The notes under the pieces: generated by a model
What the model saw: only the letters and a program-made list of their open reading frames with translations
Databases searched by the model: none
What the model was told of the DNA's origin: nothing
Program-made: the position numbers and the translations under genes
Shown: positions 8,260 through 53,100 of the stretch, in pieces
Position numbering within the stretch: the stretch's first letter is position 1
Layout: every line of letters starts with the position of its first letter
Assembly (NCBI GenBank): GCA_002104905.1
Contig: MCFE01000497.1
Span: 2,555-66,554, forward strand
Direction of reading: 5' to 3'
Origin: Basidiobolus meristosporus CBS 931.73
Taxonomy: Eukaryota; Fungi; Basidiobolomycota
Length of the DNA: 64,000 nucleotides

Positions 8260-8272
8260 CTCCCACTCAGCT
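8260..8272 (-). promoter_or_regulatory. Copia polypurine tract (AGCTGAGTGGGAG)
   Basis: Abuts the 3' LTR start; same motif at 59998-60010. Confidence 0.85.
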
Positions 8273-11200
8273 AAATGTTCATACTGACTAGTCCTAATTT
8301 TGACCTAAGATATTCAAACTTGTCTCTAGCTAATGGTTTGGTAAATATGTCTGCAATCATTTCATCTGTAGGACAGTAAACTAAGCTAACTAAGTTATTC
8401 TCTATAGCTTCACGTATGAAATGATGTCTAATATCTATGTGCTTGGTTCTAGCATGAAAAGTTGGATTTCTACCTAATTGCATACATCCTTGATTATCTT
8501 GAAATAAAGTAATAGGCGTTTTTTGACATAGGCCTAAATCTGTTAAGAGTTTTCTTAACCACATTGCTTCTTTTGTAGCTTCACAGACTGCCATATACTC
8601 TGCCTCTGTAGTAGAAAGTGCTACGGTTGGTTGCTTTCTTGAATTCCATGAAATTGCTCCTTTACAGTAAAGAAAGGTATATCCTGTGGTGGAACTTCTG
8701 TCTTCCAAATTTTGTCCCCAATCAGCATCAGAGTATCCCGCAAGATCCTGTTCTGAGTCCTTATAAGTGTATCTTAAGCAGATATCAGCAGTTCCTTTTA
8801 GGTATCTAAAAATCCGCTTAACTGCTGCAATATGATCAGATCCATAGTTCTGATTATGTTGGCTGACAACTCCCACTGAATATGAGATATCTGGACGTGT
8901 TCCAAGCATGATATACATCAGACTGCCGACCATAAATTGATAAGGAAAGTCAGGGCTTTCAGATGGCACCAAGCTCTCTCGATTTGGTTGAGTTTTGACC
9001 AAGTTAAGGTTTGTCTCCATTGGGGTAGCTGCCGGTTTACAGTCTTCCATTTTGTACTTCTTTAGTATATCTTGAATATACTTGGATTGGCTTAGGGTGA
9101 TGGTCTGGGTACTTCTGTCTATGGAGAACTTAATCCCTAAGTAGTAACTAAGTTCTCCTAGATTGGACATCTTCAACTCCTTAGATAGGTCAGATTCAGT
9201 CTCTTCCAATGTTTCTAGGTTATTGGCGGCTATAATAAGATCATCCACATATAGAGCTAATAGAACTGGATTTGCTCTATCTGGCTTATAGTATATACTA
9301 TAGTCAGCATTACTTCTTTTGAAACTCAAAGATTCCAAATAAGAATCTATCTTGCAATTCCAGGCTCTTGGTGATTGTTTGAGACCATATAGTGACTTTT
9401 TAAGCTTGCAGACCAAATGGGGGTTATCTTGGTCAACAAGCCCATCAGGCTGGTCCATATACACATCCTCATCAAGTTCTCCATTCAAAAATGCAGTTTT
9501 TACATCCATTTGATGAATAAAAAACTTATATTTGGCTGTAATAGCCAATATTAATCTGATGGAATTAAACTTGGCTACCGGGGCAAAGGTCTCAGTATAG
9601 TCAAGTCCTTTTGTTTGAGAGTATCCTTTGGCTACAAGTCTTGCTTTGTATCTTTCAATTGTACCATCAGCCTTGTATTTTGTCTTGAAGACCCATCTGC
9701 ATCCAATTGATTTTTGGTTGATTGGTAATTTGACTAAGTCCCAAGTTTGATTTTCCATCAGGGCCTGATATTCCTCAGTCATTGCAGATCTCCAAAACTT
9801 TGTCTGAGGGCTATTTAGGGCCTCTTTTACAGTCTGGGGTTCATCAATATGGACTGAGTAGGCATAGGCTAAGTTTGTACCCTCATTGATATAGTAATTT
9901 GGGCTATTTCTTGTCTGATTTGATCTCCGGGCATTTGATACTGGAACAATCACTTCTGGGATATTACTGGGCACTGATTCTGGCTGAACCACGGTTGTAG
10001 AGTCCTCTGGAGTGAAAAAATTTTCATTGTTTTGCTCTGATTCAATCCTGACCATTGGTGGACTTGAGATCAAATTTCCGTCATCATCTGATGTCATTTT
10101 TTGTGAAAATTTTGAATTTTCATCAAACAACACATCCCTGGACTTGATAAGCTTCTTTGCTTTGGTATTGTAGAGTCTGTATGCCTTACTCTCATTGCAG
10201 TAGCCCAAAAATATGCATTTTACACTTATTGGCTCAAATTTTGACTGATTTCCGGCCAGTTTTTTGGCATATGCTGTACACCCAAATATTCTTAGATGTT
10301 CTGCACTTGGTCTGTATCCATACCATGCTTCAAATGGAGTATAATCACGAAGTATTCTGTTATAACTCCTATTTTTAAGATATACAGTAGTGGCAACTGA
10401 TTCCGCCCAAAAATCATAGGATAATTTTGGATCATGGATCATAGATCTTGCCATATCAATTATTGATCTGTTAGCTTGTTCTGCTACTCCATTTTGCTAT
10501 GGGGAGTATGGTACAGTAGTCTCTTGCTTTATCCCATGAATTTTGCAGAAGTGGATGGAGAGTTTTGAGGTATATTCTCCACCATTGTCAGAGCGTATTT
10601 TCTTGATTTTTCCACCAGTTTCTCTCTCCACCATGGCTTTAAACTCCCTGAGCTTAGACAGAGCTTCTTCCTTTCTCTCCATGAAGTAGACCCATGTGTA
10701 TCTTGTATAATCATCAATAAAAGTGATTAAACACTTCATCCCGCCTAAGGATAAATTTTGCATAGGTCCACACAGATCTGAGTGAATTAGATCTAATTTT
10801 TTCTTAGTTTTGATTAACCCAGAGCTCTTGAACGGTTGTCTGGCTTGTTTCTCATATATGCAGGCTTGACAGTGCTCCAAATTAGCTGGGGGATCAATTT
10901 TCACTCCAGAAATTAGCTGATCTTTGATCATTTTACGCAAATAATCAAAATTGATGTGTCCAAATCTCCTGTGCCAAAGCATTGGTGTTTCTTCATTTAA
11001 GTTACTTATATTGGCTTCCAGATATGATGGAATATAAGTCAACTTGTATAGATTCTGATCTCTGATGCCCAAAGCAATATGGGCACCATTTTGATCAGTG
11101 ATCCTGCATCCAGAATTGTCAAAACTGAAACTGAGTCCTTCTGCTGTGGCCTTGCTTACAGAGAGTAGGTTCTTGGCTATTTCTGGTACATAGGGTACTT

Positions 11201-12240
11201 CTTTAAAGGTCAGTGTATGGCTTCCTTCACTGCTTCTAAGGTTTACTTGGATAGTCCCTTCTCCCACTGCATCAAGTGTTCTATCGTCACCCATGAAAAC
11301 CTTCTTAATTGGAATTTCTTGATATTGGGTAAAAAGTTCTTTTTGGTGTGTAAAGTGTTGAGAAGCTCCAGAGTCAATATACCACGTCTGAGAATCCTTG
11401 TTTGTGGTCATATTTAGTGCAGATATGAAAAGTCTATCTTCAGTTGTTGCAGCATTTCCATATTCAGGCTTCTTTTGCTGATAAACTCTCTTTTTGAAAC
11501 ACCGGTCTGATGTGTGTCCTTTCCTTTTGCAGTAGTTGCAAAATAGGTTGCTGTTGCCTTTGTAGGGTCTTGGGTACCTCCTTTGTTGGTTATCATTGCT
11601 TATTAAAGCATTTCTTCTTCCTTCTTATTGGCGCTTGATTTTCTTAATTCTTCATCCAGGAGCCTTCCATATACATAAGTTAAGGTCAAATCTTCAGTTC
11701 TGGACTCTAGGGCTGATACAAGGCCCTGAAACCTGTCTGTCAGGCTATTCAGGATGGTAACTATCACATCCTCATCAGTAGTTGGTACGCCCACAGATTC
11801 CATCTCATCTACCAGCAGGGTAATTCTGTTAATTAGATTTTTCATTTCTTCTCCTGGCAGCATCTTTGTAGTAAAGAATTTTCTTCTCAGATACATTTTC
11901 TTGGCAGCTGAACATGACTGGAAGGTGTCTTTTAATGCCTTCCAGGCATTCTTTGCCGTTTTTGCTCTTGAGCATTGAATTAGCAATTTGTCTTTGACAT
12001 TAAGGCAAATGCAGTTAAAGGCACTTTGTTCTTTCTTCTGGTACTTTAAGGCTTCCTCTCCCACGTTTTTAGGAGGGCATTCTTCTCCCATGACAATATC
12101 CCAAAGGCCTCTTTCTTGTAGCAGCATCTTCATCTTCACCTTCCACACTTGGTAGTTAGATCCATCCAACTTTTCAGCAGAGGGAAAAATTCCAGTAATA
12201 GCAGTAGTAGACATTGCAGAGAGTGACAGCTTGGGGCTCA
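8271..12240 (-). pseudogene. Copia gag-pol (gag, CCHC knuckle, protease, integrase, RT, RNase H) with one frameshift and one nonsense codon
   Basis: CNYCKRKGHTSDRC knuckle, WYIDSGAS protease, DNGGEY integrase, LYVDD RT, YSDADW/RTKHIDIR RNase H. One A lost at ~11611-11613; CAG>TAG at 10497-10499. Confidence 0.95.
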
Positions 12241-12245
12241 TAACC
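12234..12245 (-). promoter_or_regulatory. Primer-binding site GGTTATGAGCCC (half-tRNA-iMet type)
   Basis: Directly after the 5' LTR; complementary to the anticodon stem-loop GGGCUCAUAACC of initiator tRNA, as in Ty5 and Drosophila copia. Also at 2749-2760 and, variant, at 56026. Confidence 0.9.
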
Positions 12246-14699
12246 GGTTGTAAGAGTCTTGGAGATATTGGAAGTGATTTGGAGAACAAGTAGATTATGT
12301 GGTTTTCACTTAATGATTTATTGAATGTAAAAGTAGTATTTATACTTTTACCTGGTCTTGGCATTACAAACACATAGAATAGGCTAAGGAAGGTCCCAAG
12401 AACATGTGTGCAAAGTTTGGGGCTGTTTGGACAACTTTGAGAATTTTCATATTCTGGGTACCTGGCATTTTGGTGAAAATATTCTAAGTAAATCCCGACA
12501 AGGAATTTAGTCAGTATTCTCTAGGATTTGAAGGTGATGATCTAAGTGACTAAGTTAGGTGAATATTTAGGTGGAAATACAAATTTTTACAACACAAAGT
12601 AGCCCTTGCTTCTTAGCTGTTTGTAATGTTTGCCATTAAAAATATTGGATATGTTTGCGCTTGATTGATATCAAGTGCAGTACTGTATAGCTTTGCCATA
12701 TTTGTTGGACTGCATCAGCTTCCTCAGATGGGTTATGACTGGAATATATCTGGAGTGTGAACAATGTTTTCCCTGGATGGTGGTGGATTCCTAACAATTT
12801 GGACACATTGCAATGGTAGCATTTTTGGATGTGAATGCCATGCAACTGTTAACACATGCTGGAATCAGGACAGTCTCTGGATCACATGTTGCCAGCTGCA
12901 TGACAGTTGTCCACTTGTACCATGTACATGGTAGGTTGCATCCTGCTATGATTCTGGCAAGAAGTAGTAATAAATCCTCAAAGCCCCCATCACTAATATT
13001 AGTGGGAACACACCACTTCTCTAGCCACAACATTACATCATTCACCAGTAGATGGATTACTGGGCTCACCTGGCTCCATAAAGTATCCTTGGCATTTGTT
13101 TCAACAGATGTTGTCTCATTGCATATAAGGATTTGACTGGGCTCATACATGGTACTGTTGTTAGGGGAAATAGGCTAAAAATCCATCTGTGAACCTTCTT
13201 TGTCAAAGCTATCACTCTACATGCCATATTCAGAAGGCTGAGGTGAGCCTAAAGGCATCACAAACGCACCTGACTCAGTTTGTGCAAGGTGACAAAGACA
13301 GCCAGGTGCCAATATAGAATTATTAACTGGTTGGTAAGAAAATGATGGTACAGTAGTAACCAATGAATGGCCAAATATGACTTGTTTGGCACAACACTGG
13401 CCATGATCCTTGTAATACTTCCTATGCTCTCTGCATGCTTCATGGCTGAACAGCTTGCTACAATAGCCACATGGTCTTTTTTCACTTCTCTTATGGTGTT
13501 GAGTCAAAGTAGTCTTGTCCATGGGGTAAACAGCTTGACCTTCATCAACATAATGCTATTATATCACTTTTTGGTAAATACTCATGTGAATTTAAGCCAG
13601 TCTTGTATTTGAAACATTGCACCTACATGAATGTAAGATTCAATGGTGACCTGTCATAGTAAGCATTATAAATGAGGTTGTGGCACCACATAAACACATG
13701 TATGTAACACTATTTCCCCTTTGGTTTGACTCACTTCCATATATATGCCGCCAAAAAATAAGGAAAGTTGTTTGGTTCCCAACCAAACCCTGCTGCTGAC
13801 AGCAACAGAAGAATGGTGGACAACAGCTTGCTTTGACATTCAGTGCAACAAGCAGGGCTACATTCAAAATAAGCCCTGTGGATAGTGTGCTCATTGAAGG
13901 TAATAATGCAGACAGCTCAGACTCTCAGTCAAGTAGGCAATTGAGAACCTCTGCAGTGCCACAAGCTGTCCGTTATGCTCAGGCAGATGAGAATGTAGCA
14001 AACTCAGTACCCTCAGTTGAGGACCATCAAGTTGCTGTTATAACATCACCACCACCCATATTAGGAAGTATGTTGTCAGCTCATACCAAAGCACTAATGA
14101 AGCAATTAGGTGCAGTGGCAGGTAGGATAGATGCAATGGCCCAGAGAAATCAGGAAATAACCCAGAAACAGGATGAGCGGATAATACGTCTAGAGCAATC
14201 AATATCCCAGGTAGAGAAAGCAGTATCTTTGCTGCAAAGATGGAACTCAAGTAGCTCAATGTCACAGCCTAGAATTGAGCCATTTCCCAATAAAACAGTA
14301 GAGGAACATCATACAGTCATTGAAGCACAACAACAGTGCCCAAAGATAAAGCCCATAGAAAAACCTATCACAGCATTGGAGGGAGACAATGTGGTATCTA
14401 TACCTGTCAGGACACTGTCCAGAGACCATTTAAAAATAATTACAACTCAGATTTCACAAAATACTTAGTCAAAATTTTTCATCACAACAATGTATAAGTG
14501 GCTTTAGATTGGTTCCCTGCCAATTTGCTTGCTTTCTGATCCCGGGCACTCTATTGCCTCTTACGTTTGTGTGAATTGATTGGCTATTGCCTCTTTTTCA
14601 CACTCCTTACTTCCTGAGTCAACCATTTCACTTACTTTTCATGCTTACAAATTGATTTATTTCCGCTGAAACTTCAGTTGTACCTCAATTGCCAATTGT

Positions 14700-16733
14700 A
14701 TTGACCTATACAAGTCTCTTTACCCTACACTAACATTAAGCCCAACCCCACACTCAACAAGTAACTCCATTAAAAACCACCACTCAATAAGTATTTCTGC
14801 TGTAACGCTCTGGTTCCACAACCTTGGCAGGAACCCAATGGCTTTATGCCACTGTTCATTCACTGGTTCCCACATGCCCCAGTCTTCAGCTGGCACTGCA
14901 AGGTCTAGCTCCTCATCTGCCAGTCTTTGCAATAAATCCTTGCTATATTCCAGTGCATTTTCTTGAGCACTGCTCTTGAACAAGTGCTACAACCTCTTGG
15001 TGTGCCTATTAATGTTCAAAAACTCCACTGAAGGCATTGTGATAGTCTTTTGAGCTCTTGACATTGTAGCCTTGTCTGTCAGTGGGATCTACACTCTGTC
15101 AACAATGGAGGCTGCGGAGGTTGTGGAGGCTGTGGTAGACAAATTGCCTTTTTCAGCAAACTCATCTACCTTGCTGGAGTGTAGCTCAACTGGCTGTGCT
15201 TCCAACTCTTGTGAAAACAGCTGTTTTCTTGTTTGTAATTCTTCTTGGCTATGATGGGATTTGGTCTGTTCCTGGCTTGTGGCATTAATTGGCAAGAACT
15301 GCAGTTTTTTTGCATGCCTCCCTGTCTCAGGCTTGGGTAGACATTTTTCTCTTTACCTTTTCCTTTATCACTGCCAGGTCTTTCACTGCTACTTTGTCTG
15401 AGTGCTTCTTGTAAAGAACTGCGTTTTCTCCTGGATAAATTCTGCTCTGACACATCTGTTTTGGCCTGCTTGTCCCTTGCTGGCACTCTTCTGGCAACCT
15501 GACGTTTCTTTTCAGCTTGTTTTGAGCCCTTGACCGTAGTTGTGACAGGCTCCTGTAAAAGCAGCTGGTTTTTATCACCAGCAGGTCCTTCACTGCTACT
15601 TTGACTGGGTGCTTCTTGAGTGGTACTACGCTTTTTCCTTGATAAATGTTGTGCTTGTGCATCCATGTCTGCCTGCTTGTCCCTAATTGGCAATCTTCCA
15701 GCTGCCTGACATCTCTTTGATGCTTATCTAGAGCTTTTGGCCCTGCTTGTAATGGGCTCTTGAGGAAGCTGCTGGTTTTAGCTATGGCACCCTTGTTCTT
15801 CTGCCTTTGATAGTTTCTGCTATTTTCAAGAAACTTTCTTAGCATACCAATGCTGGCCCAAAATCTGTTTGCCCGTTTGAATCCAGGGTAATGCTCCTGG
15901 AACAAGTCAAGTGCATTCTGCTTAGCCTTGAGTTCCTGATGGTCCCATGGTATGCTGGCCTTAAGGTGATGGCATGCTAGACTTCTGATGGCCTCTTGTA
16001 TATTAACCCACTCTATATTATTGCACTCAATGGCTTCATGGATCTTCAATGTCTATTGACTTTTAGGCTTTGGCATAAACACCACATTGTCTCCCTGCCA
16101 TGCTGTGATAGATTTTTCTGTGAGCTTTATCTTTGGGTACTGTTGTTGTGCTTCAAAGACTGTACGGTGTTCCTCTGCTGTTACATCAGGAAATGGCTCA
16201 GTTCTTGACTGTGACATTGAGCTACTTGAGTTCCTTCTTTGCAGCAAAGATACTGCTTTCTCTACCTGGGATATTGATTGCTCTACACATATTATCCGCT
16301 CATCCTGTTTCTGGACTACTTCCTAATATCTCTGGGCCATTGCATCTATCCTATCAGCCACTGCACCTAATTGCTTCATTAATGCTTTGGTATGAGCTGA
16401 CAACATACATGCTAATATGGGTGGTGGTGATGTTATCATGGCCACTTGCTGATCTTCAACAGAGGGTACTGCGTTTGCTACATTCTCATCTGCCTGAGCA
16501 TAACGGTCAGCTTGTGGCTCTGCAGAGGTTCTCAATTGCCTACTTGACTGAGAGCCTGAGTAGTCCGCATTATTACCTTCAATGGGCACACTGTCCACCG
16601 GGCCTTTTTTGGATGTAGCCCCACTTGTTGCACTGAGTGTCAAAGCAAGCTGTTGTCCAACCATTCTTCTGTTGCCATCAGTGGTGGGGTTGGGTTGAGA
16701 ACCAGATGACTTTGCTTTATTTTTTGGCGGCAT
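14700..16733 (-). pseudogene. CACTA accessory (TnpA-position) ORF, divergent from the transposase
   Basis: Low-complexity S/Q-rich and coiled-coil-like pieces plus a conserved block (YPGFKRANRFWASIGMLRKFLENSRNYQR) found in several copies, always divergent from the transposase; function inferred from position only. Confidence 0.6.
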
Positions 16734-16955
16734 ATATATGGAAGTGAGTCAAACCAAAGGGGAAATAGTGTTACATATACATGTGTATGTGGTGCCACAG
16801 CTTTATTTATAATGCTTACTATGGCAGGTCATCATTAAATCTAACATTCATGCAGGTGCAATGTCTCAAATACAAGACTGGCTTAAATTCACATGAGTAT
16901 TTACCAAAAAGTGATATAATAGCATTATGTTGTTGAAGGTCAAACTGTTTGCCCC

Positions 16956-19188
16956 ATGGACAAGACTACTTTGACTCAATGCTATAAGAGAAGAGAAAAA
17001 GACCATATGGCTATTGTGGCAAGCCTCTCAGCCACAAAGCATGCAGACAGTATAGGAAGTATTCCAAGAATCATGGCCAGTGTTTTGCCACCCAAGTCAT
17101 ATTTGACCATTCATTGGTCACTACTGTACCAATATTATCTTGCCAGCCAGTTGATACTTCTATATCAGCACCTGGCCATCTTTTTCACCTTGCGCAAACT
17201 GAGTCAGGTGAGTTTTTGATGCCTTTAGGCTCACCTCAGCCTTCTGAATATGGCATGTAGAGTGATAGCTTTGACAAAGAAGGTTCACAGATGGATTTTT
17301 AGCCTCTTTCCCCTAACAACAGTACCACATCTGAGCCTGGTCAAATCCCTATATGCAATGAGACAACACCTGTTGAAACAAATGCCAAGGATACTTTATG
17401 GGGCCAAGTGAGCCCAGTAATCCATCTACTGGTGAATGATGTGATGTTGTGGCTAGAGAAGTGGCGCATTTCCACTAATATCAGTAATGGGGGCTTTGAG
17501 GATTTATTACTACTTCCTGCCAAAATCATACCAGGATGCAACTTACCAGGTACATGGTACAAGTGAACAACCGTCATGCGGCTGGCAGCATATGATCCAG
17601 ACACTGTCCTGATTCCAGCATGTGTTAACAGTTGCAAGGCATTCACATCCAAAAATGCTACCATTGCAATGTGTCCAAATTGTCAGGAATCCACCACCAT
17701 TGAGGGAAAACATTGTTCAAACTCCGGATATATTCCAGTCATACCCCATCTGAGGAAGCTGATGCAGTCCAACAAATATTGCAAAGCTATACAGTACTGC
17801 ACTCAGTATCAATCAAGCGCAAACATATCTGATATATTTGATGGCAAACATTACAAGCAGCTAAGAAGCAAGGGCTACTTTGAAGGTATGTATGACCATG
17901 CCTTTACTTTAGCACTTAATGGACTCTCATTAAACAAGAACTCTACCAGCAAATCCTGCTGGCCACTGATTCTCATCAATCTGAATCTGCTGCCCATCTT
18001 ACAGTATCAGAGCAATATCTGATGGTAGTCTCACTGGTATCTGGGCATAAATCACCATCCAACCTGGATAGCTACCTGTATCCATTGCTGAATGAATTTT
18101 GTATGCTTTCCAGTGGGATAACAGTTTATGGCCATCATGTAAAAGCGCATATTATTATCTGCATTGGAGATACCCCAGCCATCAGCAAGATAGCAGGTTT
18201 TTCCAGGCACAATGGATGGTATTGTTGTTGAATGTGTGAGATCCAGGGGATTTACTCCATAACTCACACACATTATTATTACCCAAACACCAGCACTTAG
18301 AACATCATCTTTCCACAGAGAGAACATACAGAAGTCAGCATGCAATTGCAGCAAAGTTGGGAAGCTATAAGTCATTGGCCAGAATATGGAATCAATTGGA
18401 AACCAGAGATACTAAAGATAGAGGGTATCTGTTGGAGCAAAAGCATTCCACTGGGAGCAATGCATTTGCTTTTTAACAATATCCCTATACTGATGACCAA
18501 GTTGTACATGGGGCATTTCAAGCTAAATGAGCACTTCAAGATACCGGAGAAATTTGAAAATATTGGCAAGATACTACAGTTTATCTGCTACCCTAAGTAC
18601 TTCTCACAGGCTCCAGTTTATAGTCATATGCATATGCAACAATACAAATGCAAAGACTGGATGAACTGGATATGTATTTGTTCAAGTGGTGTTCTGAAGC
18701 CATTCCTCCCAATAGTACATTGGAAGCATTGGGAGTCATATGTGGACATTGTAGGAATATTCATCCAGAAGCAGATCACCAATGCCAACTTGACACATCT
18801 ACAGCTGTTGTATGAGGAGTTTGTGACAAGATTTGAGTGGCTATACTACAAACATAAAGTTGAACGTGTAGATCTCTGCCGCTACTGTATCCACTCTCTA
18901 CTGCATCTTGCACGGTGTGTGGAGAATATTGGGCCTTGCTTCACCTTTTGGGAGTTTCCTATGGAGCGGATGTGTGGGGAGATAGGAAGACAAGTCAAGT
19001 TGGAGGTACTACCACATCCCAATCTCATCAAGAATATTACCTTCAAGTCTGTCATGGATGTGATGAGTTGGCACATGGAGGACAGCCAGAAAGAGTTGGA
19101 AACTACTGAGGACAAATGTGCACATGGAGACACCTATGCCAATGGCATTAAGAAGCTAAGCAGCCCCAATGTGTGGGTAATCAGCTAA
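16956..19188 (+). pseudogene. CACTA-family (Transposase_21/Tnp2-like) transposase
   Basis: Pieces 16956-17219, 17576-18022, 18022-18231, 18340-19188 with LALNG, GDTPAISKIAG, PLGAMHLLFNN, FWEFPMERMCG. The N-terminal CxxC...H cluster (RPCGYCSK...H) is clearest in the copies at 13217-13522 and 38715-38999. Confidence 0.88.
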
Positions 19189-20269
19189 GTAATGCAAAGT
19201 TGGGTTGGGTGCAACAAGCAACTAATTTTTATCAGGAAAACTCCACCAAGATATGCCGGATTTCACGTGGTTACAAGCCAACTTCTACACCATTCAATAC
19301 AGAATTCACACAAACAAAAGCCAGAGTGCACCTATAAGGGGTACTAGAATCCAGCAGGGAGAAGGAATACATTGGCTAAATACCAAGAAGTTCTTTGCCA
19401 ATATTCAGGAGGTATTCATGGCAGAAGTGGCAACAACCAAGCATATGTTTGCAAGATGTATATGCTACCAGCAGTACATGGTATATGGCAACTTTGCAAG
19501 TATCAAACTAAAAAGCCATAAAGTTGAGGTGATGGAAGTATGTCAATTGCGGCAGGTGTGCATGTTTGTAGAGGTTAGTAAGCAGGAGGCCATAGTTTTT
19601 TTTGATTCAAACTATATGTGGAATACCCAAGGTAGTAGTGGGTAAGCAAATAAAGAAAGGTGATTCTACAGTGGAATATATGAATTGCACAAGGGGAGGT
19701 AGAAAAGGGATATACCATTTGGTAATTTGGTATGGTAGCATTATACAAAACCAGCAGCAGGCCATCATACTGCCAAAGAAAGGCCATCAGAGTCTTGCTG
19801 TGAGGCCATCAAAACACTGTCAAGTTTCTAGCCATATAAGGCAATTGAAGTCCTGGCCAACTGGATCCACTTAAAATAGTAATAGAGTGCTGAAAGACCG
19901 CAACAATAACATGCAAATATTGTCACAGCACCAATCAAAAATTGTCAAGTTTTATCCCTTTATTTGGCTGTAAGATTTGCAAAACACCGTCATGATCTCA
20001 TTATAAGATTGTCAGGAGGGTCACTAATTCCAAGCTGCTGTTATTATGACAGGCTCTGAATGGGATCTTGACGGATGATCCAGATTGGATCCACCCGTGG
20101 GACCAAGTTATTTTTCATAGTGTATGGTCTTGGCAGTGCAAACATCTAGAGTATGCTCAGAAAGGCCCCTTGCACAAATTTTTAAAGCATTGGGCTGCAT
20201 GGGCAACTTTCAGATATCTCAGGCTTTGGGTTCCTGATAACCTTGTGAAAGAATTCTGAGCAAATTCCA

Positions 20270-25667: not shown

Positions 25668-27813
25668 TGTAGTGGGGTGACAGTGACACCCACTGACAGA
25701 TGTGCTCATTCCCTTATTTTCCACTTCCCTATATCTCTACTACACTTATTTTAGTTTTATCCCATTTGTCTTACCCAATCAGTACTATCCCATAAGCCGG
25801 TTGACTATCACACCTGCTTACCTTATTGCATAAGTTACCCCTCCCTTTATGTAAGATTACTAGCTACAAGTGCTTCTATATTAGGCAAGTACCCGCGCCA
25901 GTACCCGTGACACATGATCAACCCATGTCACCATCCCTACCATTTCCATACCATATATGGTATCCCCATGTTACACAGGTTTCAGAATACTGATTCCTGA
26001 TTGGTTGGATGTGCTGTGCCTCTTAGAACCTTCCGGTGTGGTGGTGTATAAGTCCAAGGGAGATATACGTCCAACACTTCTCAAGTGTTTTGTGTGTGGG
26101 GTGTTCACTGGGTGCAATAACCTCTGGCAAAAGCTTGCTAGGAATACTTGGGTTCTGTCTCTAATCTAATGTGAAGGGGAATAAAGCCACAAGCTTGTCA
26201 AGGGAAAACTATTGAGCTACAATCCCCAACTTAGTTGGCGTCTTAACAAAAGTATGTGCTGGGTTCAGCGTCCTTTGAGATGACAATGTACTAAAGCTTC
26301 CAAAGTCAAAACAACTGTAAACTCCACCAGCAGGGACTTGATAAGAATACAGCTGTGGTCAATAGTTACAAAGACAGAAAAGTATCTTTGCCTGTACAAG
26401 AACAAACTTGGGAAAGAATCAAATATAATAAAAGATACCTACTCTGAGTATTCCTCACAAGTAGTACCTCCAAGGTCAGTTGGCTGTCAGCGCGGTTTCC
26501 TGGGAGTGTCCTGTGGTCTGGGGTTGGAAGTTCAGGTAGCAGCAGGTAGCAGTGATCACACTAATCAACAAGTCAGTATATTGATAAAAGGGATGATGAT
26601 TTATTGTTGAGGGATAGCCTCCCTTATATACTTTTCTCACTGGCTAAGTGATTACTAATCATGGTGTTCCAGAAGGTTTCAGATATCAATAGAAATCTTA
26701 ATGACATCAGAATGACCTAAGAATGTTCTAAGTAGGTGCCAGAAGGTTCTAAGAGGCACAGCACATCCAACCAATCAGGAATCAGTATTCTGAAACCTTT
26801 GTAACATGGGGATACCATATATGGTATGGAAATGGTAGGGATGGTGACACGGGTTGATCATGTGTCACGGGTACTGGCGCGGGTACTTGCCTAATATAGA
26901 AATACTTATAGCTAGTAATCTTACATAAAGTGAGGGGTAACTTATGCAATAAGGTAAGCAGGTGTGATAGTCAACCGGCTTATGGGATAGTACTGATTGG
27001 GTAAGACAAATGGGATAAAACTAAAATAAGTGTTGTAGAGATATAGGGAAGTAGAAAATAAAGGAATGAGCACATCTGTCAGTGGGTGTCACTGTCACCC
27101 CACTACACCGGCACCTACTTAGAACATTCTTAGGTCATTCTGATGTCATTAAGATTTCTATTGATATCTGAAACCTTCTGGAACACCATGATTAGTAATC
27201 ACTTAGCCGGTAAGAAAAGTATATAAGGGAGGCTATCCCTCAACAATAAATCATCATCCCTTTTATCAATATACTGACTTGTTGATTAGTGTGATCACTG
27301 CTACCTGCTGCTACCTGAACTTCCAACCCTAGACCACAGGACACTCCCAGGAAACTGCGCTGACAGCCAACTGACCTTGGAGGCACTACTTGTGAGGAAT
27401 ACTCAGAGTAGGTATCTTTTATTATATTTGATTCTTTCCCAAGTTTGTTCTTGTACAGGCAAAGATACTTTTCTGTCTTTGTAACTATTGACCACAGCTG
27501 CATTCTTATCAAGTCCCTGCTGGTGGAGTTTACAGTTGTTTTGACTTTGGAAGCTTTAGTACATTGTCATCTCAAAGGACGCTGAACCCAGCACATACTT
27601 TTGTTAAGACGCCAACTAAGTTGGGGATTGTAGCTCAATAGTTTTCCCTTGACAAGCTTGTGGCTTTATTCCCCTTCACATTAGATTAGAGACAGAACCC
27701 AAGTATTCCTAGCAAGCTTTTGCCAGAGGTTATCGCACCCAGTGAACACCCCACACACAAAACACTTGAGAAGTGTTGGACGTATATCCCCCTTGGACCT
27801 ATACACCACCACA
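25668..27813 (+). mobile_element. 1071-bp solo LTR (third LTR family), outer copy, split by a second copy
   Basis: TGTAGTGG...CCACCACA termini; 369+702 bp halves; TSD GCAG/GCGG; TATATAA at ~27220; no internal coding region found in the window. Confidence 0.85.
26037..27107 (-). mobile_element. 1071-bp solo LTR, inner copy, inverted
   Basis: Full reverse-complement copy of the same LTR with perfect TSD CCGG (26033-26036 / 27108-27111). Confidence 0.9.
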
Positions 27814-28616
27814 GCGGTAAAAAATATTGGGTAGCCAGAAGAGTGCCAGTGAGAAACAGGCAAGCAGATACATATGCATTGATGCAGCATGCATCAATGT
27901 GAACACAAATTTTAATACAAGAAGCACTCATTCACAGTAGCAGTGAAGGACCTGAGAGTGAGAAAAGGCTGCAGAGTTCTCAGAAGCCTATCAAAAGCAG
28001 GGCAGAAGGTTTCAAGCTAGTGACATTTGTCCATTATTGCTTCCATATCCTAACTTCCTTCACTTTATCTTTCTGCTGATGGCCAAGGGACAACTCCTCT
28101 AACACAGAGTTCTGAGCTTTGTTGCAGGTGGGACCATGGTGTGTTTGAGCACAGGAATCTACATAACATCATTGGTTCAAAATATTCAACTATTTGAGAG
28201 TGATATAGTCAAAATTCACCTGGATCAAAAATAATACCTACAGGAACTAATTGTGATGATCTTATCAAAAGCCCATAAGAAAACTAAAGCCTTGTGACCA
28301 AGAGGTATTGACCCTGTCAGGACACCATGCAAGAACTGTTGAAAGATGATTGCACTGCATATTTCACAAGATGCTTGACTAAGATTTTTCATCACAACAA
28401 TACCCCTATGAATAATAATTTGGTCCAACAGGTGGATCCAATCCAGATCAGCTGTCAAGATCCTTTTAGGTAACTGTTCTAATACAAGCAGCTGGAAATA
28501 ACTGACCATCTACACAAACTTATGATGGGATCACAATGGCACTTGGCTAATTTTACTACCAAATCAAGTTGAAAAACATAACAGTGTTTGTGTGGTGTTT
28601 TGCTCAGGGTGGGATG

Positions 28617-28965
28617 TGTTCAAATATTAGAGAGATATATTGGAAGTGAACTGGAGAATTAGAAGATATACATGATATTCACTTGATGTTTTATTGAGTT
28701 GCAACACAGTATTTATACTTAGTGCAGAACTATGTAAATGTGACTATTTGGTCATTATTAGGGGATTCTCAGGAGTACATGTGCCAAGTTTTAGCTCATC
28801 TGGACAAGTGTCAGATTTTCCTAAAATTCTGTACTTCTCTAGTTCCTAATAATTAGTAAATATCTTTCAAACTAATTTCCATGTTGATAATCTGAAATAT
28901 ATCCTTTCACTGAGTGCTAGTTCATAATATATTAATAATTAGGTGGACTCCTAATTATTTCAATA
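28617..28965 (-). mobile_element. Diverged copia-type LTR with adjacent PPT
   Basis: TGTT...TTCAATA, 349 bp, followed by CTCCCACT (reverse complement AGTGGGAG PPT). Confidence 0.65.
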
Positions 28966-30813
28966 CTCCCACTCACATAATATATTGATATACTTATGAA
29001 CTTGCTGTGGTGTTGTGTATCTTGCGGTTGAAATTAAAGCTGCAATTAACCATCTAACCTATTGGGCTAATGTATTCTCCAATATATGTTAAGGATTGCA
29101 TATTATCTGTAATAACTACGTATAAGTCCATACTGTTAATTACTTACTTCACATCAAATTGCTTTGAGTCTGAACTCTGATCTCATCACAAATATCTATG
29201 AGTGAGTATCATCAATTTGATTGGAGTAAAACTTTTCAGATACTGATTAAATCCTGGCATAGCTTGTATCATCAGAGAGCTGCATTCTCAGGCTTTCTGC
29301 TGTTTCTTATTGGAGTAAAATTGGTCAATAATCGGCAAAGTTAGGAAGTGGTCTTCTCTCCAGTAGATCTGGATCATCCACAGTTCTGGTCTATAGTCTA
29401 ATTCACTTAGACTATCCTCCATATATCCATAACTGGATCTGGATAGTAACTTTCCTCATATACTCCATATATGATCTGCTGAGACCAACAATTGATCAGC
29501 ATTGTAGTTGCCTTATTCTTCACTGGTTGACTAAGTATTTCCTCTTCCGGACTAGTGCTTTCAATGGTGTCTAGCCTAGCTTTTCTTCATTCCTGATCTG
29601 GGATATTGTACTCCCACTAAAGCTATGTCTTCTGGTGCTTCCTGCCTTCTAAAACTGACTGAGATAGATCATATATATCCTTCTGATCTAGGCATAACTT
29701 TCTTGGACTGATATCACTGTCACAGTATTCAGATCTTCCCTTTGCATCTTGATAGGCTTGATTTGGTATCACAGCATACCACAGCTTGTCTTTGTATATC
29801 CCACACATTTGCTCCACAGGAAATACCCAAAAGGTGAAGCAAGGTCCAAGATTCTCAAGACACTGTGCCAGATGGAGTAGCAAATGGATACAGTAGTGGC
29901 AGATATTTACATGTTCAGCTTTATGCTTATATTGTGGCCACTCAAATCCCACAAACACTTGTTGCACAAAAGCTGTGGATGCATGAAGTTGGCATTGTTG
30001 ATCCACTTCTGTATAAACATTCCTACAATATCAACATTTGACTCCCAGTGTTTCCAATATACTCTTAGTAGAAATGGTTTCAAAAGGCCATTTGAATAAA
30101 TACATATCCAGTTCATCCAGTCCTTGCACTTGTATTGTTGCATAGGCATATGAATGTTGATTGGAGCCTGCAAAAAATACCTAAGGTAGAGGATACTCTG
30201 CAATATCTTGCCAGTTCTTTCAAATTTCATAGGTATCTCAATGGGCTCATTTAGCTTGAAATGCCCTATGTATAAATTGGTTGTCAGTATAGGGATATTA
30301 TTGAAAGCAAATGCATTACTCCCAGTAACATGGTTTTGCTCCAGCAGATACTCTCTGTATTTGGTATCTCTAGCTTTCAATCAATTCCATATTCCAGTCA
30401 ATGACTCACAGCTTGCCAACTTTGCTGTAATTGCATGCTGACTTCTTTGTGTTCTCTCTACATAACAATGATGTTCTTAGTGTTGGTGCGTGCGTTATAT
30501 TCATATATATGAGTTATGGATTGAGTCTCCATGGTCTCTTGCATTCAGAAGCAATACTGTCCATTGTGCCCAGACAAGCTGGATATCCTGCTGATAACTG
30601 GGGTATCCTCAATGCAGATAATCATACGTGCTTTGACATGTTGGCCATTTACTGTTATCCTGCTGGAAAGCACACAAAATGCATCCAACAATGGATGCAG
30701 GTAGCTGTCCAGGGTGGACAGTGATTTAGGCCCAGATATCTGTGAGATTGCCATCCAATTTCTGCACTGCTACTGTAAGATAGGTGACAGATTCAGGTTG
30801 AAGAGAATCAGTG

Positions 30814-30938
30814 CTTGTTCCAGAAGTTTCAGAGTTGCTTTCCAACCCAATTGCATGAAAGGAGCTCAAGTTACTTTGTGTGGCAACTTGCATAACTTCT
30901 TGAGCAGATATAATTCCTATTGGTGTTCCAGGTTCCAT
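30814..30938 (-). pseudogene. Fragment of a multisubunit RNA polymerase largest subunit (RPB1/beta' trigger-loop region), divergent and probably virus-type
   Basis: MEPGTPIGIISAQEVMQVATQSNLSSFHAIGLESNSETSGTS aligns without gaps to the RPB1 motif [38 protein letters not shown] (yeast, recalled); truncated by CACTA sequence at 30813. Confidence 0.8.
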
Positions 30939-31052
30939 GATTCATGCATATATATATATTCGTCAACTTTTTGAACATAACATTTTTTGGATTGAACATT
31001 TAAATCTCATTACTAAATAAGATCTATTTAAGATTCTAACTTTAAATCACCC

Positions 31053-31562
31053 ATGTCCCCAGAAAATTTAGGAAAACAAGCTTTATCTGATATTGTTGAA
31101 TCTGCCAACAAGATTATTGCGGGCATGATTTATACAGTCATGTCTGACTTTAGCAGCAAACTTATTAAAGAAGGCTTAGATTCCAATACTGTTCTCAAAT
31201 GCACTAACAAACTTAGCTCCAATTATCTTGGTGAAGGCGTTAAAATTAGAAAAAAGCCTGCTCCTAGAGCTCCTAAGGCTCCTGGTACTACTAAATCTTC
31301 TAGTACTACTAAAAGTTGTTCCAAGCCTACTCCTAAAACTCTTACTTGGGAACCTCATCCTGAAGACCCAGATAATTATTCTTTCACCAGAGACATTGTA
31401 CTTAAGAAGGGCCTTCCTGTATGTTATAACAAGAACAAGAAGGTTGTCTATGTTGGTGGTAAAGATGAGGTATATGACCTCGAAGTTGAAGATGCTATGC
31501 TCTTGAGTAACTATAACCTTGTTTGTGATATGTCTTTTGCTGGTGTTCCTAAAGCGGAATAA
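31053..31562 (+). CDS. Orphan 169-aa protein with central K/P/S/T-rich linker; not part of any TE family in the window
   Basis: Uninterrupted ORF with strong T-ending codon bias, single copy in the window, divergent from the RNAP fragment across 114 bp. Confidence 0.75.
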   Translation: MSPENLGKQALSDIVESANKIIAGMIYTVMSDFSSKLIKEGLDSNTVLKCTNKLSSNYLGEGVKIRKKPAPRAPKAPGTTKSSSTTKSCSKPTPKTLTWEPHPEDPDNYSFTRDIVLKKGLPVCYNKNKKVVYVGGKDEVYDLEVEDAMLLSNYNLVCDMSFAGVPKAE

Positions 31563-31589
31563 ATAAGATATGTTTTTGTCTTAAAACTA

Positions 31590-31735
31590 TTTTTTAAAAG
31601 ATCTTAGACCAAAGTATATTTAAAACCAAATTTAAAAACTATATTTAAAAGATCAAAAACCATATTTAAAAACCAAATATCTAAAACCAAACTTAAAAAA
31701 CATATTTAAAAAACTATATTTAAAAACTAAAAAAG
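31590..31735 (+). repeat. Degenerate AT-rich tandem repeats (ATATTTAAAAAC-like)
   Basis: Repeated (T)ATTTAAAA(A)C / CCAAA units directly downstream of the orphan ORF. Confidence 0.7.
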
Positions 31736-32880
31736 CTAATAAGGCAAAGGTAGACAGACACACATGCACCAGCACAACCTTTACTAATGAAGAAGTGTAG
31801 TTCTACTCAAGAAGCTCTCAGTCAAAGTAGCAGTGAAGGACCTGCAGTGATAAAGCAAAAGGTAAAGGGAAAAAAGTTGCCCAAGCCAGAGATAGGGAAG
31901 CATGAGAGAAATGCTGCAGTCCTTGCCTATCAATGGTGTAAGCTCAGAACTGACTGAATCACATCATAGCCATGAAGAATTACTAACAAGAAAATAGATG
32001 TTTTCACAAAAGCTGGAAGCACAGCCATATGACCTACACAATACTGAGGTAGATGAGTTTTCTGAGACAAGAAATTTGACTTCCACAGCCTCCACACCAT
32101 CCACTGTTGATAGAGTGGAGATCTTGCTGACAGGCCAAGTAGCAGCATCAAGAGCTCAAAGGTTATCACAATGCCTTCAGTAGAATTTTGGAACATTAAT
32201 AGGCACACCAAAAGGTTGCAGTACTTCTTCAAGAGCAGTGCTCAAGAAATCACATATGGATACTGCAAGGAGTTATTGCAAAGGCTGGCAGATGAGGTTC
32301 TAGACCTTGCAGTAATGGTGGAAGACCAGGACATATGGAACCAGTGAAAGAACAGTGGCATAAAGCTGTAGGGTTCCTGCCAAAGTCATGGAAACAGAGC
32401 ATTGCAGCCAAATACTTATTGAGCAGTGGATTTTAATGGAGTTACTTCTTAATTGCAGGGTTAGGCTTGTTGTTAGTTTAGGGTACAGTGACTTGCATAG
32501 GCCAATACAATTGGCATTTGAGGTGCCACTAAAGTTCCAACAGAAAGAACTAAACTTATATGCATGAAAAGTAAGAGAAACAGTTGAGTCAGGAAGTAAG
32601 GAGTGTGAAGAAGAGGCAATAGTCAATCAATACACACAAGTGTAGGAGGGTATAGAATATCTAGGATGAGAAAGTGAGCAAATTGACAGGGAACCAATCA
32701 AGAGTCACTTATACATTGTTGTGATGAAAATTTTTGACAGGGTTTTTTGTGAAATCTGGGGTGCAATTATTTTTCAATGGTCTCTGGACCGTGTCCTGGC
32801 AAGATCAGTACCTTTTAGTCATGGGTTGTTAGTTTTGTGATGACCTTTTGATGGGATCATCTCAATAATTTTTCATAGGG

Positions 32881-45779: not shown

Positions 45780-46553
45780 CTATATATGACTTTGTCTGTA
45801 TTTACTTGCCAATATCCTGAATCTCTTCAGATATCCAAATGTGTGCTCTACCCTCACTCTGAAATGATTAAATATCTCATTGTAGAGCTTCTGCTTCCTG
45901 CTAAGCACACCATTTCTTGGCTTCCTATAAGCTGTAATACATCCTAATCTCTGACAATCCTCTCCTATATAGGCTAAGTCTGCCATACATTTCTCCCCTC
46001 TACTGAATTCAGGATGATTCTCTACCCAGAGTGCTTTGTCATGCCTACTTCCAGCAAATGGCCCACTAAACCAGATGATGTTATCCTCAATGTCAGACAG
46101 TGCTTGAAACTTCACACAGTGTGCCTTGTACTTGCCAGAATAAAAGTGCCTCTGCCCTCTAGAAGGTCTGTTAATCCTCACTGGGAAGGTATCCAAAATA
46201 CTCCTGATACGGAACTTGTTGCTGAACACTCTGGGATATGGAAGTCTATTGGAGCTTCTGAACATAGTATTCCAAGCTTGCTCTAAGTCATTCATACCCT
46301 CTGCAAGGTGGTTCTCCTTTGCTGTCAGCTGGGAATGAAAGCTTCTAGGACTTTTGTTGCCATGGATGGTGAGATGAAACCTTGTAGAGCAATAGTTCTT
46401 GTAATAGCAGAGAAGCTTAACAAGGGATCTCCTTGAGTAGATTGGGGTTGATGGTCCACAGTACTTGGAATAGATCTCCTCTAGGATGTTAAAAGGAAAT
46501 TCAGTGGTAGTGATGGGATTGATGAGAAAAGACCATTCAGATGAGTAAGTCAT
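45780..46553 (-). CDS. DDE_Tnp_4-type transposase (C-terminus frameshifted relative to copy B)
   Basis: ILDTF, YSGKYKAHCVKFQ, GSRHD, MADLAY, RVRVEHTFGYLKRF motifs typical of Harbinger/IS5-like DDE enzymes. Confidence 0.9.
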   Translation of the reverse strand: MTYSSEWSFLINPITTTEFPFNILEEIYSKYCGPSTPIYSRRSLVKLLCYYKNYCSTRFHLTIHGNKSPRSFHSQLTAKENHLAEGMNDLEQAWNTMFRSSNRLPYPRVFSNKFRIRSILDTFPVRINRPSRGQRHFYSGKYKAHCVKFQALSDIEDNIIWFSGPFAGSRHDKALWVENHPEFSRGEKCMADLAYIGEDCQRLGCITAYRKPRNGVLSRKQKLYNEIFNHFRVRVEHTFGYLKRFRILASKYRQSHI

Positions 46554-50166: not shown

Positions 50167-50180
50167 TTCTCCCCTACTAA
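50167..50180 (-). promoter_or_regulatory. Gypsy polypurine tract (TTAGTAGGGGAGAA)
   Basis: Abuts the 3' LTR and overlaps the stop codon. Confidence 0.8.
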
Positions 50181-53100
50181 AGTTGAGAGGGTTCTCCTGA
50201 ATCTCTTTTCTTGTGATACCAATATCTTGATGGTTCAGTATTATCAGCAAGTCTTGCAAGCTTGAGTCTGTCCCTATGCACTAAGTCTTCCCGGATATTG
50301 CCTTGTTTGTCCACCAGTTGGTAAGTTGCAAATGGACATTCTCTGATGATCTTGAATGGTCCTGTCCATTGTGGCTCAAACTTCTTCCGAGTGTTGTTTC
50401 TTAGCAATACAAAGTTCCCAACTGTCAATGCTTCTGGTGCTATAGTCTTATCAAATCTCTGCTTCATCTTTTCTGCACTTTGAGATACTTTGGTCTGTGC
50501 CTCTTGACGTCTTTGTTCCAGTTGCTGGTGTCTACTTGGCTGACTGAGTTCATCTTCTAAGGTGTCTGTAAGCTTTGGTTGTGTGAGATCTCCTGGAATC
50601 CTTGGTTCACATCCATAAACTAAGTAAAATGGTGATTGCTGGGTGGTGTTGTGTACTCTGACTCTGCATGCAAAGAGTGCTTGGTCTATATACTCATCCC
50701 ATCTACTGACAACTCCATTTGCATACTTGGTCAGCATTTTTCCAAATAATCCATTAAACCGCTCAGTGACTCCATTAGTTCTGGGGTGATATGCCGAGGT
50801 TTTCAAGTGTCTGATCTGCTGCATTTCCAGGTAAGCCTCTAATGTCTTTGCCATAAAGTTTGCACCTCTATCGGATAAGATCTCCACAGGGCATCCAAAC
50901 TTCATCAGGATCTCATGGTAAATGAAACTTGCAACTTCTTGTTCACTGGCTATTGGTACAGCTTTAGCAACTGGCCATTTAGTGGCATGGTCAATTGCTA
51001 CTAGGATCCAACGGTTGCATTTCCTGGTAGTTGGCAGTCTTCCAATAAAGTCAATTCCCCATCTCTCAAATGGTCTTACAGGCTCCAAAGGGAAGAGTTC
51101 GGCAATTCTTTGTGGCTGGCCTTGATTGATTTGGCAGTTTGGGCATGTTTTTACTAGCTTCTCAATGTCTTGTTTCATTCTGGGCCACCATGCTCTGGCT
51201 TTTACAAGGCTATAGGTTCCTTCAATCCCAAGATGTCCATATCCATTGTGTAGCTTATGTATTAAATCCAGGCGAGCAACATAAGGACAATAGGCAATAG
51301 GGCTTCCATCAACAATTCGGTAGAGTGTTTCATTCTGTACAACAAATTTGCTGGCCTCATCACGGATTATCTTCTTGATATCTTCATCCACCTCATTAGG
51401 AATGGCTTGGTCCTCCAAGTACTTTGGTAATAGGCTAGGCCAATCTGATTCATGCACCAAGTTGAGTTGTGCAACTTGATCTAATCTTGATAAGGCATCA
51501 GCAACCGTGTTGTTTTTTCCAGGACAGTAGACAATCTCCAGGTCAAATTGCTGAATGTATTCACTCCATCTTGTCATTCTTCTAGAGAGTACCTTCTGAG
51601 TAAATATATACTTGAGGGAGGCATGATCAGTCTTCACAGTGCATTTGACTCCTTCAATATAGCATCTCCATGTCTTCAAACAGTGTATTATAGCAAGCAT
51701 CTCCTTCTCATGAACTGGATAGTTTTGTTCTGCTGAGTTCAGTTTCTTGGATTCAAAGGCAACAGGGTAGTCCTTTCCCTCGTGTTCTTGGCTCAGCACT
51801 CCACCAATTGCATAATCTGAAGCATCTGTGCACAGAGTGAACTCTTTTCTGAAGTCTGGTATTCTTAAGCTTGGCAGCTTAGCAAGTTCATTCTTTAGTG
51901 TCTGGAAGGCAGTCTCACAAGCTATGTCCCACTTGTAGGTATTGTCTTTCTTGAGGATATCAGTTAAAGGGGCTGCAATACTTGCAAATGACTTGACAAA
52001 TCTCCGATAATAGGAAACCATTCCAAGGAAGGATCTGAGTTCTGATATGCTATGGGGCTGCTTCAAATTCTTGATTACTTCCACCTTCTTGGGGTCTAAG
52101 GTTACTCCTGTGCTAGTCACTATGTGTCCCAGATATTCTACGTGTTCCTTGAAGAATTCACACTTGGCTAGCTTGCCGTATAGCTTGTTCTCTCTTAGTT
52201 TCTTCAAGACCTTTTCAATGTGCACCATGTGATCCTTTTCTGTCTTGCTGTATATCAATATGTCATCCAGGTAGATTATCACAAACTTGTCTAAGTACTC
52301 CTGAAAGACAGTCTGCATCAGCGTCATGAATGTTGCAGGGGCATTAGTGAGGCCAAAACTCATGACTAAGTACTCGTAATGTCCATATCTGGTCCTGAAT
52401 GCTGTCTTAGGGATATCTTCTGGTTTCACCCTAATCTGGTTGTATCCTGACATGAGGTCGATCTTGCTGAAAATAGTGGCTCCATTAAGTTGGTCCAAAA
52501 GCTCATCAATCCGAGGTATGGGGTACTTATTCTTGACGGTAACTGAGTTCAGGGCTCTGTAGTCAATGCACATCCTAAGTGTTCCATCCTTCTTTTTCAC
52601 AAAAAGCACTGGTGCTCCCCAAGGTGACTTGCTGGGCCTGATGTATCCTTGCTCCAATAGCTGATCAATTTGTTTCTTCATTTCCTCCAATTCCAATGGA
52701 CTCATTCTGTAAGGTGTCTTGCTCACTGGAGGGCTATCTCCTGTGTCAATGGCATGATCCACATCTCTGACTGGTGGTAGGCTTACAAGCTCATCTGGAA
52801 ACACGTCTGAATATTTCTTCAAGAGAGTCTGGACCTGCTGGGGTGCTGGGATAGAGGAATCCTCCTGTAATACCGCCATGAGGAACATCTGGGTACCTTT
52901 TCTAAGTGCTCTACAGAACTGGGTCTTGCTAAGTTCACTTGTCTCACACACACTGGAATTGACCAAGTTGAAATCCAGCCTGGCAGGTAATAGCTCATAG
53001 GTCTTGTTGTCTTTTTGGATCTGAGTAGCATGGGTTCTCCAGTTGATTGATGGATTACGACAAAATAGCCAGGTTTTCCCAAGTACAAGGTCAAACTTGC

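Follow-up and report, generated by a model that had tools for sequence, protein, structure and literature searches.

The question raised by this locus is whether a very short coding segment lying among transposable elements is really a piece of a viral RNA polymerase gene and, if so, how it came to be there. The stretch of DNA analysed here, called the window, has 64,000 nucleotides and belongs to the fungus Basidiobolus meristosporus CBS 931.73 (assembly GCA_002104905.1, contig MCFE01000497.1, positions 2,555 to 66,554, forward strand). Its minus strand encodes a peptide of 42 residues which a preliminary description, made from the letters of the sequence, had read as the trigger-loop segment of a virus-type RNA polymerase largest subunit. 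Here we analyzed the peptide, its relatives and its flanking regions. The peptide is, with a probability that we put at roughly 0.8, the authentic 5′ end of a viral gene encoding a separate C-terminal part of the largest subunit (RP1c). It lies in a 919-bp relic of a lineage similar to the nucleocytoplasmic large DNA viruses (NCLDVs), which has endogenous copies in Basidiobolus. The relic is inside a CACTA-like transposon, most likely as captured or filler DNA.

Identity of the trigger-loop peptide

The minus strand from 30938 to 30813 was translated and gave exactly the 42-residue peptide quoted in the preliminary description. In the mechanical track of open reading frames (ORFs) these viral codons are masked, as had been said, by their fusion to CACTA-like transposon sequence in one ORF of 70 amino acids (30726-30938). 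This ORF matched the Pfam family RNA_pol_Rpb1_5 (PF04998) at profile positions 69-108 with an E-value of 3.4e-6. Among the solved structures in PDB it matched residues 1059-1098 of RPB1 of RNA polymerase II (Pol II) and residues 60-97 of archaeal Rpo1C/A″, with E-values of about 0.006. Taken alone, these matches of the window fragment would make a weak and marginal identification. The 42 residues are also 100% identical to residues 1-42 of P0009, a B. meristosporus protein of 359 amino acids which scores 71.9 bits against PF04998, and because this identical N-terminus belongs to a protein with such a score, the Rpb1_5 match of the window peptide is not due to chance. The trigger-loop fragment on the minus strand is thus real, and the identity of the gene was observed directly.

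The residues of the motif were compared in a set of 7 RP1c family members and 11 archaeal A″ sequences. T20, Q21, L24, F27, H28 and G31 were invariant in all of them (18/18), while four consecutive columns of the trigger helix, invariant in 11/11 archaeal sequences, were kept in 0/7 family members. The departure of the trigger helix from the cellular pattern, which had been noticed at the first reading, therefore holds against archaeal A″. The remaining codons of RP1c, beyond these 42 of about 359, are absent from the 64-kb window and the Rpb1_5 domain is incomplete; the RP1c fragment in the window is non-functional.

RP1c as a separate gene

An exhaustive HMMER search with the 42 residues gave only five proteins, of 106-389 amino acids, at E ≤0.001, all having the motif at the N-terminus or at most about 30 residues from it. 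The relatives of RP1c have 317-389 amino acids. Four of them start at the same methionine as the window peptide, namely three Basidiobolus-type proteins (P0009, P0004 and P0010) and the metagenomic protein P0008, and three others (P0006, P0007 and P0011) have N-terminal extensions of 13-30 residues; these seven proteins are 324-389 amino acids long. P0009 is annotated in its source as ‘beta and beta-prime subunits of DNA dependent RNA-polymerase’, and a B. ranarum protein, ‘Rpoa2p’, shows 76% identity to it. Because the closest relatives begin there and the motif is N-terminal in the relatives of 317-389 amino acids, the methionine at 30938 is the native start of a separate C-terminal subunit gene, like archaeal A″.

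A separate gene for the N-terminal part of Rpb1 (RP1n) was tracked in the metagenomic relatives L015, L011 and L016 and in a 21.9-kb JGI contig. RP1n of L015 encodes 673 amino acids, with Rpb1 domains 1-4 and Rpb1_5 profile positions 1-52, and ends just past the bridge-helix region; the RP1n genes of L015, L011 and L016 end at Rpb1_5 profile positions 52-56. The split was thus seen directly as two genes in these relatives, and for Basidiobolus itself RP1n has been reported by Gong et al. 2020 (PMC7017919). Judging from these gene ends, Rpb1 is divided between the bridge helix and the trigger loop, near the archaeal A′/A″ split.

The preliminary description had offered the start of a split C-terminal subunit of the archaeal A″ type as one possibility, and the relatives with the same methionine together with the separate RP1n genes of the metagenomic contigs bear this out. 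It had also taken the in-frame stops upstream as possible signs of decay in a longer frame. This is not borne out, as the closest relatives begin at this methionine and the upstream 114 bp are a conserved intergenic stretch; a longer decayed gene reading through the upstream region was rejected on the same two grounds.

The island and the transposon around it

The RP1c piece forms one end of a virus-derived island (Table 1). The longer paralogous locus, L001, is on the 92.6-kb B. meristosporus contig MCFE01000334.1 and extends past the island on both sides, with the complete RP1c gene on one side and 296 bp of further AT-rich repeats on the other. Two Logan contigs (L002 and L003) showed about 79-81% identity to the island. 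No further virus-like coding was found in the 64-kb window when 234 ORF segments from 13 related loci were tested, all viral matches falling within 30810-31580, and an Rfam scan of the window gave no match.

The island is chimeric and lies inside a nest of transposable elements, as had been proposed, since transposon sequence borders it at either end, with a CACTA-like flank on the left. The interrupted transposon is here called copy A. Its sister copy B (14405-20122, reverse) has the homologue of the left flank at 18994-17964 and that of the right flank at 15691-14405, in collinear order, and the interval of 2.27 kb between them (15692-17963) is replaced by the island in copy A. The left breakpoint is internal to the transposon, because copies B, C and D are continuous across it. 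At the left junction there is 1 nt of microhomology, and at the right one there are three additional A residues. The bounds of the island and the collinearity of the transposon copies are in this way direct observations.

The transposon was classified from a Pfam Transposase_21 (Tnp2-type) domain in an ORF of copy C at 7064-8038 (E 1.8e-14), to which positions 29785-30813 of copy A are 79-80% identical. At its terminus copy B reads CACTA at 20122 on the minus strand; the corresponding position is CCCTA or CCCTG in copy A and in two further copies, and no inverted terminus to match was found at the opposite end. Transposon families common to the window and the B. meristosporus contig of L001 are 77-88% identical. 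Two candidate ends were rejected: CACTG at 30813-30809 on the minus strand belongs to a 20-mer that lies within the transposase region of the sister copies, and position 4841 of copy B, counted from the CACTA terminus, is really a nested insertion site in the B. meristosporus copy.

Table 1. Coordinates of the virus-derived island, its parts and the flanking transposon in the window
Feature	Position	Strand	Remarks
Left part of CACTA-like transposon copy A	28404-30812	+	Head 28404-28597; body 29785-30812 with degraded Tnp2-type transposase on the minus strand
Chimeric mechanical ORF	30726-30938	-	70 amino acids: 42 viral codons and 28 transposon-derived codons; homology to transposon copies B, C and D sets in at 30813
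Virus-derived island	30813-31731		919 bp; piece of a longer endogenous NCLDV-like locus; 97.5% identical to L001 9676-10592
RP1c 5′ piece (A″-like; trigger helix)	30813-30938	-	First 42 of about 359 codons; one break, the 3′ truncation at the island edge
Divergent intergenic region	30939-31052		114 bp between RP1c and the 169-amino-acid gene; presumed bidirectional viral promoter region
169-amino-acid ORF	31053-31562	+	Intact; conserved viral family of unknown function; usual divergent neighbour of RP1c
AT-rich 3′ flank of the 169-amino-acid gene	31563-31731	+	169 bp; tandem repeats of 13/14/27 nt at 31616-31731; common to L001 up to 10592
A residues at the right junction	31732-31734		Three A, attributable to neither donor nor transposon
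Right part of copy A	31735-32801	+	Collinear with copy B 15691 to 14405

In the paralogous locus, positions 10593-10888 of L001 consist of tandem repeats of about 50 bp (94-96% between units), which come directly after the shared AT-rich repeats of 13/14 nt and have a Gypsy fragment downstream of them. Two further ORFs were noticed there at 3199-3726 and 7591-8205: a UDG-like ORF, homologous to the UDG of L006, L012 and L015 and missed by Pfam, and a 204-amino-acid ORF that has a homologue in L009. In L001 the viral segment is at least about 7 kb long and is bounded by retrotransposon sequence.

The divergent gene and the intergenic region

The 169-amino-acid ORF shows 94% identity to P0002, a hypothetical protein of B. 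meristosporus CBS 931.73, and 78% to P0001 and P0003 from the Logan contigs. Its family was found to hold 14 unnamed proteins, and the protein has no match in Pfam and no match in PDB. At the loci of all three close homologues the divergent neighbour is a protein of about 358 amino acids with Rpb1 domain 5 and with the same methionine and motif. This synteny was observed directly, the divergent pairing of RP1c and the 169-amino-acid gene being present in L001-L005 and L016.

The gap of 114 bp that the preliminary description had counted between the RP1c piece and the divergent gene is confirmed. In an alignment of four loci it shows long invariant blocks, one of them of 22 nt, and the synonymous sites in the flanking genes are near saturation (synonymous divergence, dS, 0.8-1.2). 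Conservation of this kind suggests that the region may have served as a promoter. The hexamer TAAATG at 31002-30997 is present as described, but it is not conserved as such in the relatives; as a core of a poxvirus-style late promoter it was rejected, being conserved only partly, within the longer invariant 22-nt block.

The ratio of nonsynonymous to synonymous divergence (dN/dS) between lineages is 0.09 for RP1c and 0.11-0.15 for the 169-amino-acid gene (0.15 for the window against L002 and L003), and both genes are under strong purifying selection between lineages. The window and L001 copies of the 169-amino-acid gene differ by 14 substitutions, with no insertions or deletions and with one premature stop in the L001 copy; the values for this pair (dS 0.022, dN/dS about 1.1) point to neutral drift since their divergence. 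The ORF in the window is intact and is without sign of selection in the host.

The kind of element

The contigs that carry relatives of RP1c also carry genes for RPB2, a D5-type primase-helicase, a capping enzyme/methyltransferase, a D6/D11-like SNF2 helicase, TFIIS and UDG, along with an XPG-type nuclease, a DUF5757 protein and a polymerase of either the classic family B or the DNA_pol_B_2 type. The DUF5757 protein has no match in PDB. The longest contig of the lineage, L016 (ENA ERZ26273096, contig ctg165865_5x_c), has 86.9 kb and includes the divergent pair of RP1c and the small gene. The metagenomic contigs L011, L015 and L012 measure 40 kb, 36.7 kb and 31.8 kb.

In a structure search of BFVD with the relative of 359 amino acids, every match at E ≤0.001 was an NCLDV RNA polymerase. 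The top ranks, with E-values of 1e-12 to 1e-9, were taken by iridovirus, Pithovirus, Marseillevirus and ascovirus proteins (Pimascovirales), and poxviruses appeared from rank 29. This ranking may be used as a lead, not as a placement. Pattern scans with the family alignment found no relatives in IMG/VR viral contigs or in GTDB bacterial and archaeal genomes; the lineage is not a phage or an archaeal contaminant.

Elements of this kind have been described before. Gong, Zhang and Han 2020 (Virus Evolution veaa008; PMC7017919) reported ‘fundsalphaviruses’, endogenous elements related to Pithovirus, from 14 fungi that include both B. meristosporus and B. heterosporus, with D5, SNF2 helicase, SAM methyltransferase, RPB2, RPB5, RP1n and RP1c among their genes. 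The loci were detected through the DNA polymerase, are often beside retrotransposons and were reported to carry premature stops; matches to capsid protein and packaging ATPase were present in fungal genomes and were not linked to fundsalphavirus loci (PMC7017919).

The relic in the window belongs to an NCLDV-like element of a kind already described from Basidiobolus. The view that it is a relic of an NCLDV is upheld by the gene set of the relatives, by the BFVD matches, which are to NCLDVs only, and by the published elements. The suggestion that it might come from an undescribed lineage is superseded, as elements with separate RP1n and RP1c were published in 2020 for B. meristosporus and other fungi (PMC7017919). 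The likeness to poxvirus RPO147 that had been suggested could not be maintained either, since vaccinia rpo147 is matched at E 0.056 with the fragment, is not matched at E ≤0.001 with the relative of 359 amino acids, and poxviruses rank 29th or lower in BFVD.

Some further features of the relatives were recorded. In the 20 kb of L016 that were examined, a UDP-glycosyltransferase gene lies next to RP1c, and RP1n, TFIIS, D5, UDG and the XPG-type nuclease are present; the suffix ‘_c’ in the name of this contig may mark a circular assembly. Within the clade that has RP1c, D5, SNF2 and DUF5757, L006 and L012 have a polymerase of the DNA_pol_B_2 type (the organellar/viral class), and L011 and the 21.9-kb JGI contig have a classic DNA_pol_B with exonuclease, which suggests an exchange of polymerases within one virus lineage.

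Origin of the island

In the virus, RP1c would have worked with a separate N-terminal half (carrying the clamp, active site and bridge helix) and with RPB2 in the transcription of viral genes. RP1c would carry the trigger loop and everything after it, and would be transcribed divergently from the 169-amino-acid gene across the presumed 114-bp promoter region. The lineage has left endogenous copies in Basidiobolus fungi. When a break in a transposon was repaired, a piece of one such locus would then, most likely, have been copied into it as captured or filler DNA. We infer this capture rather than another history because the flanks are collinear with one sister copy, 2.27 kb of that copy is replaced and the left breakpoint is internal.

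Several points weigh against this account. The 42-residue peptide by itself is slightly under the curated cut-off of its Pfam family (27.1 against 28.5 bits), and the AlphaFold model of the relative with 359 amino acids is poor (predicted local distance difference test score, pLDDT, 56), as is expected of a subunit that folds only within its complex. A major capsid protein and an A32-type packaging ATPase did not turn up in the stretches of about 20 kb of relatives that were examined, and the preference for a virus over a capsid-less element would thus follow from gene content and the literature. In the transposon, positions 28598-29784 of copy A have no alignment to copy B, and for copy A neither the second terminal inverted repeat nor the target-site duplication was found.

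The island could also be what is left in place of a large viral integration shredded by independent transposon insertions and deletions. The window is indeed crowded with Copia, Gypsy, CACTA-like and Harbinger-type elements, retrotransposon sequence also cuts off the paralogous B. meristosporus locus, and retrotransposons adjoin such elements according to Gong et al. (PMC7017919). Against such a remnant, both junctions are internal to a transposon and not at its termini, no other viral sequence is present in the 64 kb, and the collinearity of the flanks with a single sister copy, with 2.27 kb between them, would need at least two independent deletions with matching geometry; we consider it unlikely, and it is less parsimonious than capture. 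That both junctions lie in repeats might further point to viral reads misjoined to transposon sequence by the assembly, or to contamination, but a 92.6-kb contig of B. meristosporus holds a longer paralogue among the same transposon families, and the difference of 2.5% together with neutral evolution is as expected of an old genomic duplicate, which leaves hardly any room for an artefact. Use of the 169-amino-acid ORF and its conserved upstream region by the fungus or by the transposon would explain why the ORF is open in the window while the 97.5%-identical paralogue carries one premature stop, and why the intergenic region is retained complete. Such domestication is nevertheless highly improbable, as dN/dS between the two copies is about 1.1 (a value resting on 14 substitutions only), no Pfam or PDB match points to a host function, and an ORF of 169 codons can remain open by chance at 2.5% divergence.

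The donor of the captured piece has also to be considered. A linear plasmid of the yeast pGKL2 type, virus-like, cytoplasmic and without a capsid, which the preliminary description had named beside the NCLDVs, would agree with some metagenomic contigs of 13-32 kb that combine a polymerase of the DNA_pol_B_2 type (the protein-primed class), an SNF2 helicase and a split polymerase subunit, and with the stretches of relatives examined, in which no capsid gene was seen. Yeast linear plasmid elements are about 13 kb long and have a fused beta/beta′ subunit. The gene content of the relatives does not fit such a plasmid: they have separate RPB2 and RP1n, a D5-type primase-helicase, TFIIS, UDG and an XPG-type nuclease, the family B polymerase of other members is of the classic type, one contig has a length of 86.9 kb, and the literature sets the Basidiobolus elements beside Pithovirus (PMC7017919), so we regard a plasmid as a very poor candidate in comparison with an NCLDV-like virus. 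As for this NCLDV-like lineage itself, intact three-gene contigs under strong purifying selection occur in public sequencing runs (ERR14042384, SRR29713745 and ERR13998537), and we tentatively raise the possibility, which we find rather doubtful, that the clade ranks as a family-level group of small NCLDV-like viruses that still circulates in fungi and soil eukaryotes and of which neither an isolate nor a complete annotated genome has been described. Its defining traits would be the split after the bridge helix, the divergent pair of RP1c and the 169-amino-acid gene, the DUF5757 protein and a polymerase of either the classic or the DNA_pol_B_2 type. If this were true, the Basidiobolus copies would be recent integrations.

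Other repeats in the window

A large inverted duplication of the CACTA-like transposon occupies 5666-20122. Its arms pair 5666-7911 with 20119-17877 (89%) and 12595-14404 with 17882-16072 (91%); a Copia element with ORFs for gag, integrase and RVT_2 interrupts the left arm at about 7911-12595, and there is a unique centre of 1.67 kb at 14405-16071. Positions 26033-26740 and 27817-27110 form an inverted repeat of 708 bp with 98.6% identity and a spacer of 370 bp, which is foldback-like and much younger than the surrounding repeats. On the minus strand, an ORF at 45780-46553 has the DDE_Tnp_4 (Harbinger/PIF-type) transposase domain, which adds a fourth transposon superfamily to the nest, and positions 50177-54310 hold an uninterrupted Gypsy/Ty3 polyprotein ORF of 1377 amino acids (gag, protease, reverse transcriptase, RNase H and integrase), possibly of a young or active retrotransposon; an exact look-up of this polyprotein in the public collection gave no record.

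Value of the findings

A bare motif of 42 residues can flag a real viral fossil, and the island flagged here is a transposon-borne scrap and not the edge of a large provirus. A modestly new point is the apparent capture of endogenous viral DNA by a DNA transposon. Capture of this kind is one route by which viral fossils can multiply without new infections, and counts of integration events made from copy numbers should allow for it. Also modestly new is the neighbourhood of RP1c, the 169-amino-acid gene and DUF5757, which with the conserved blocks of the 114-bp region makes a convenient marker for this clade in metagenomes; in the literature searched, no mention of DUF5757 was found.

Comparison with known systems

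The fundsalphaviruses (PMC7017919) share with the relic the host genus and the association with transposons. Their RP1n, RP1c, RPB2, D5 and D6/D11-like SNF2 genes were all seen in the relatives studied here, and their published SAM methyltransferase may correspond to the capping enzyme/methyltransferase of these relatives. The difference lies in the locus, since the published ones were found by their DNA polymerase and the window has a 919-bp piece without polymerase, inside a DNA transposon.

Archaeal A″ (Rpo1C) is the best match of the relative with 359 amino acids among solved structures (E 6e-19, against 4e-16 for Pol II). It too is a separate polypeptide, of 391-397 amino acids, with the trigger loop and all that follows, the split being after the bridge helix. 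The motif of A″ is preceded by about 60 residues, whereas that of RP1c begins at residue 1; the identity is about 24-26%, and the genomic context of RP1c is viral, not archaeal.

The largest subunits of Pimascovirales give the top structure matches, in agreement with the published Pithovirus affinity, and include short proteins of 403-449 amino acids (for example in Diadromus pulchellus ascovirus 4a) that resemble separate C-terminal subunits, although the alignments have only 13-20% identity and the query model is poor. Poxvirus RPO147 is likewise a largest subunit from a multisubunit RNA polymerase of a virus, and its trigger loop can be recognised, but it is unsplit, with 1286 amino acids in the solved structure, and is matched more weakly (E 0.056) than Pol II or A″.

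Capture of gene fragments and filler DNA in DNA transposons, such as CACTA elements and chimeras of the Pack-MULE type, is known from plants. The present case differs in that the captured piece is viral, the host is a fungus, and copy A yielded neither its second terminus nor a target-site duplication. It resembles these systems in that foreign sequence has taken the place of a transposon's interior, between collinear flanks and with simple junctions of 0-1 nt microhomology.

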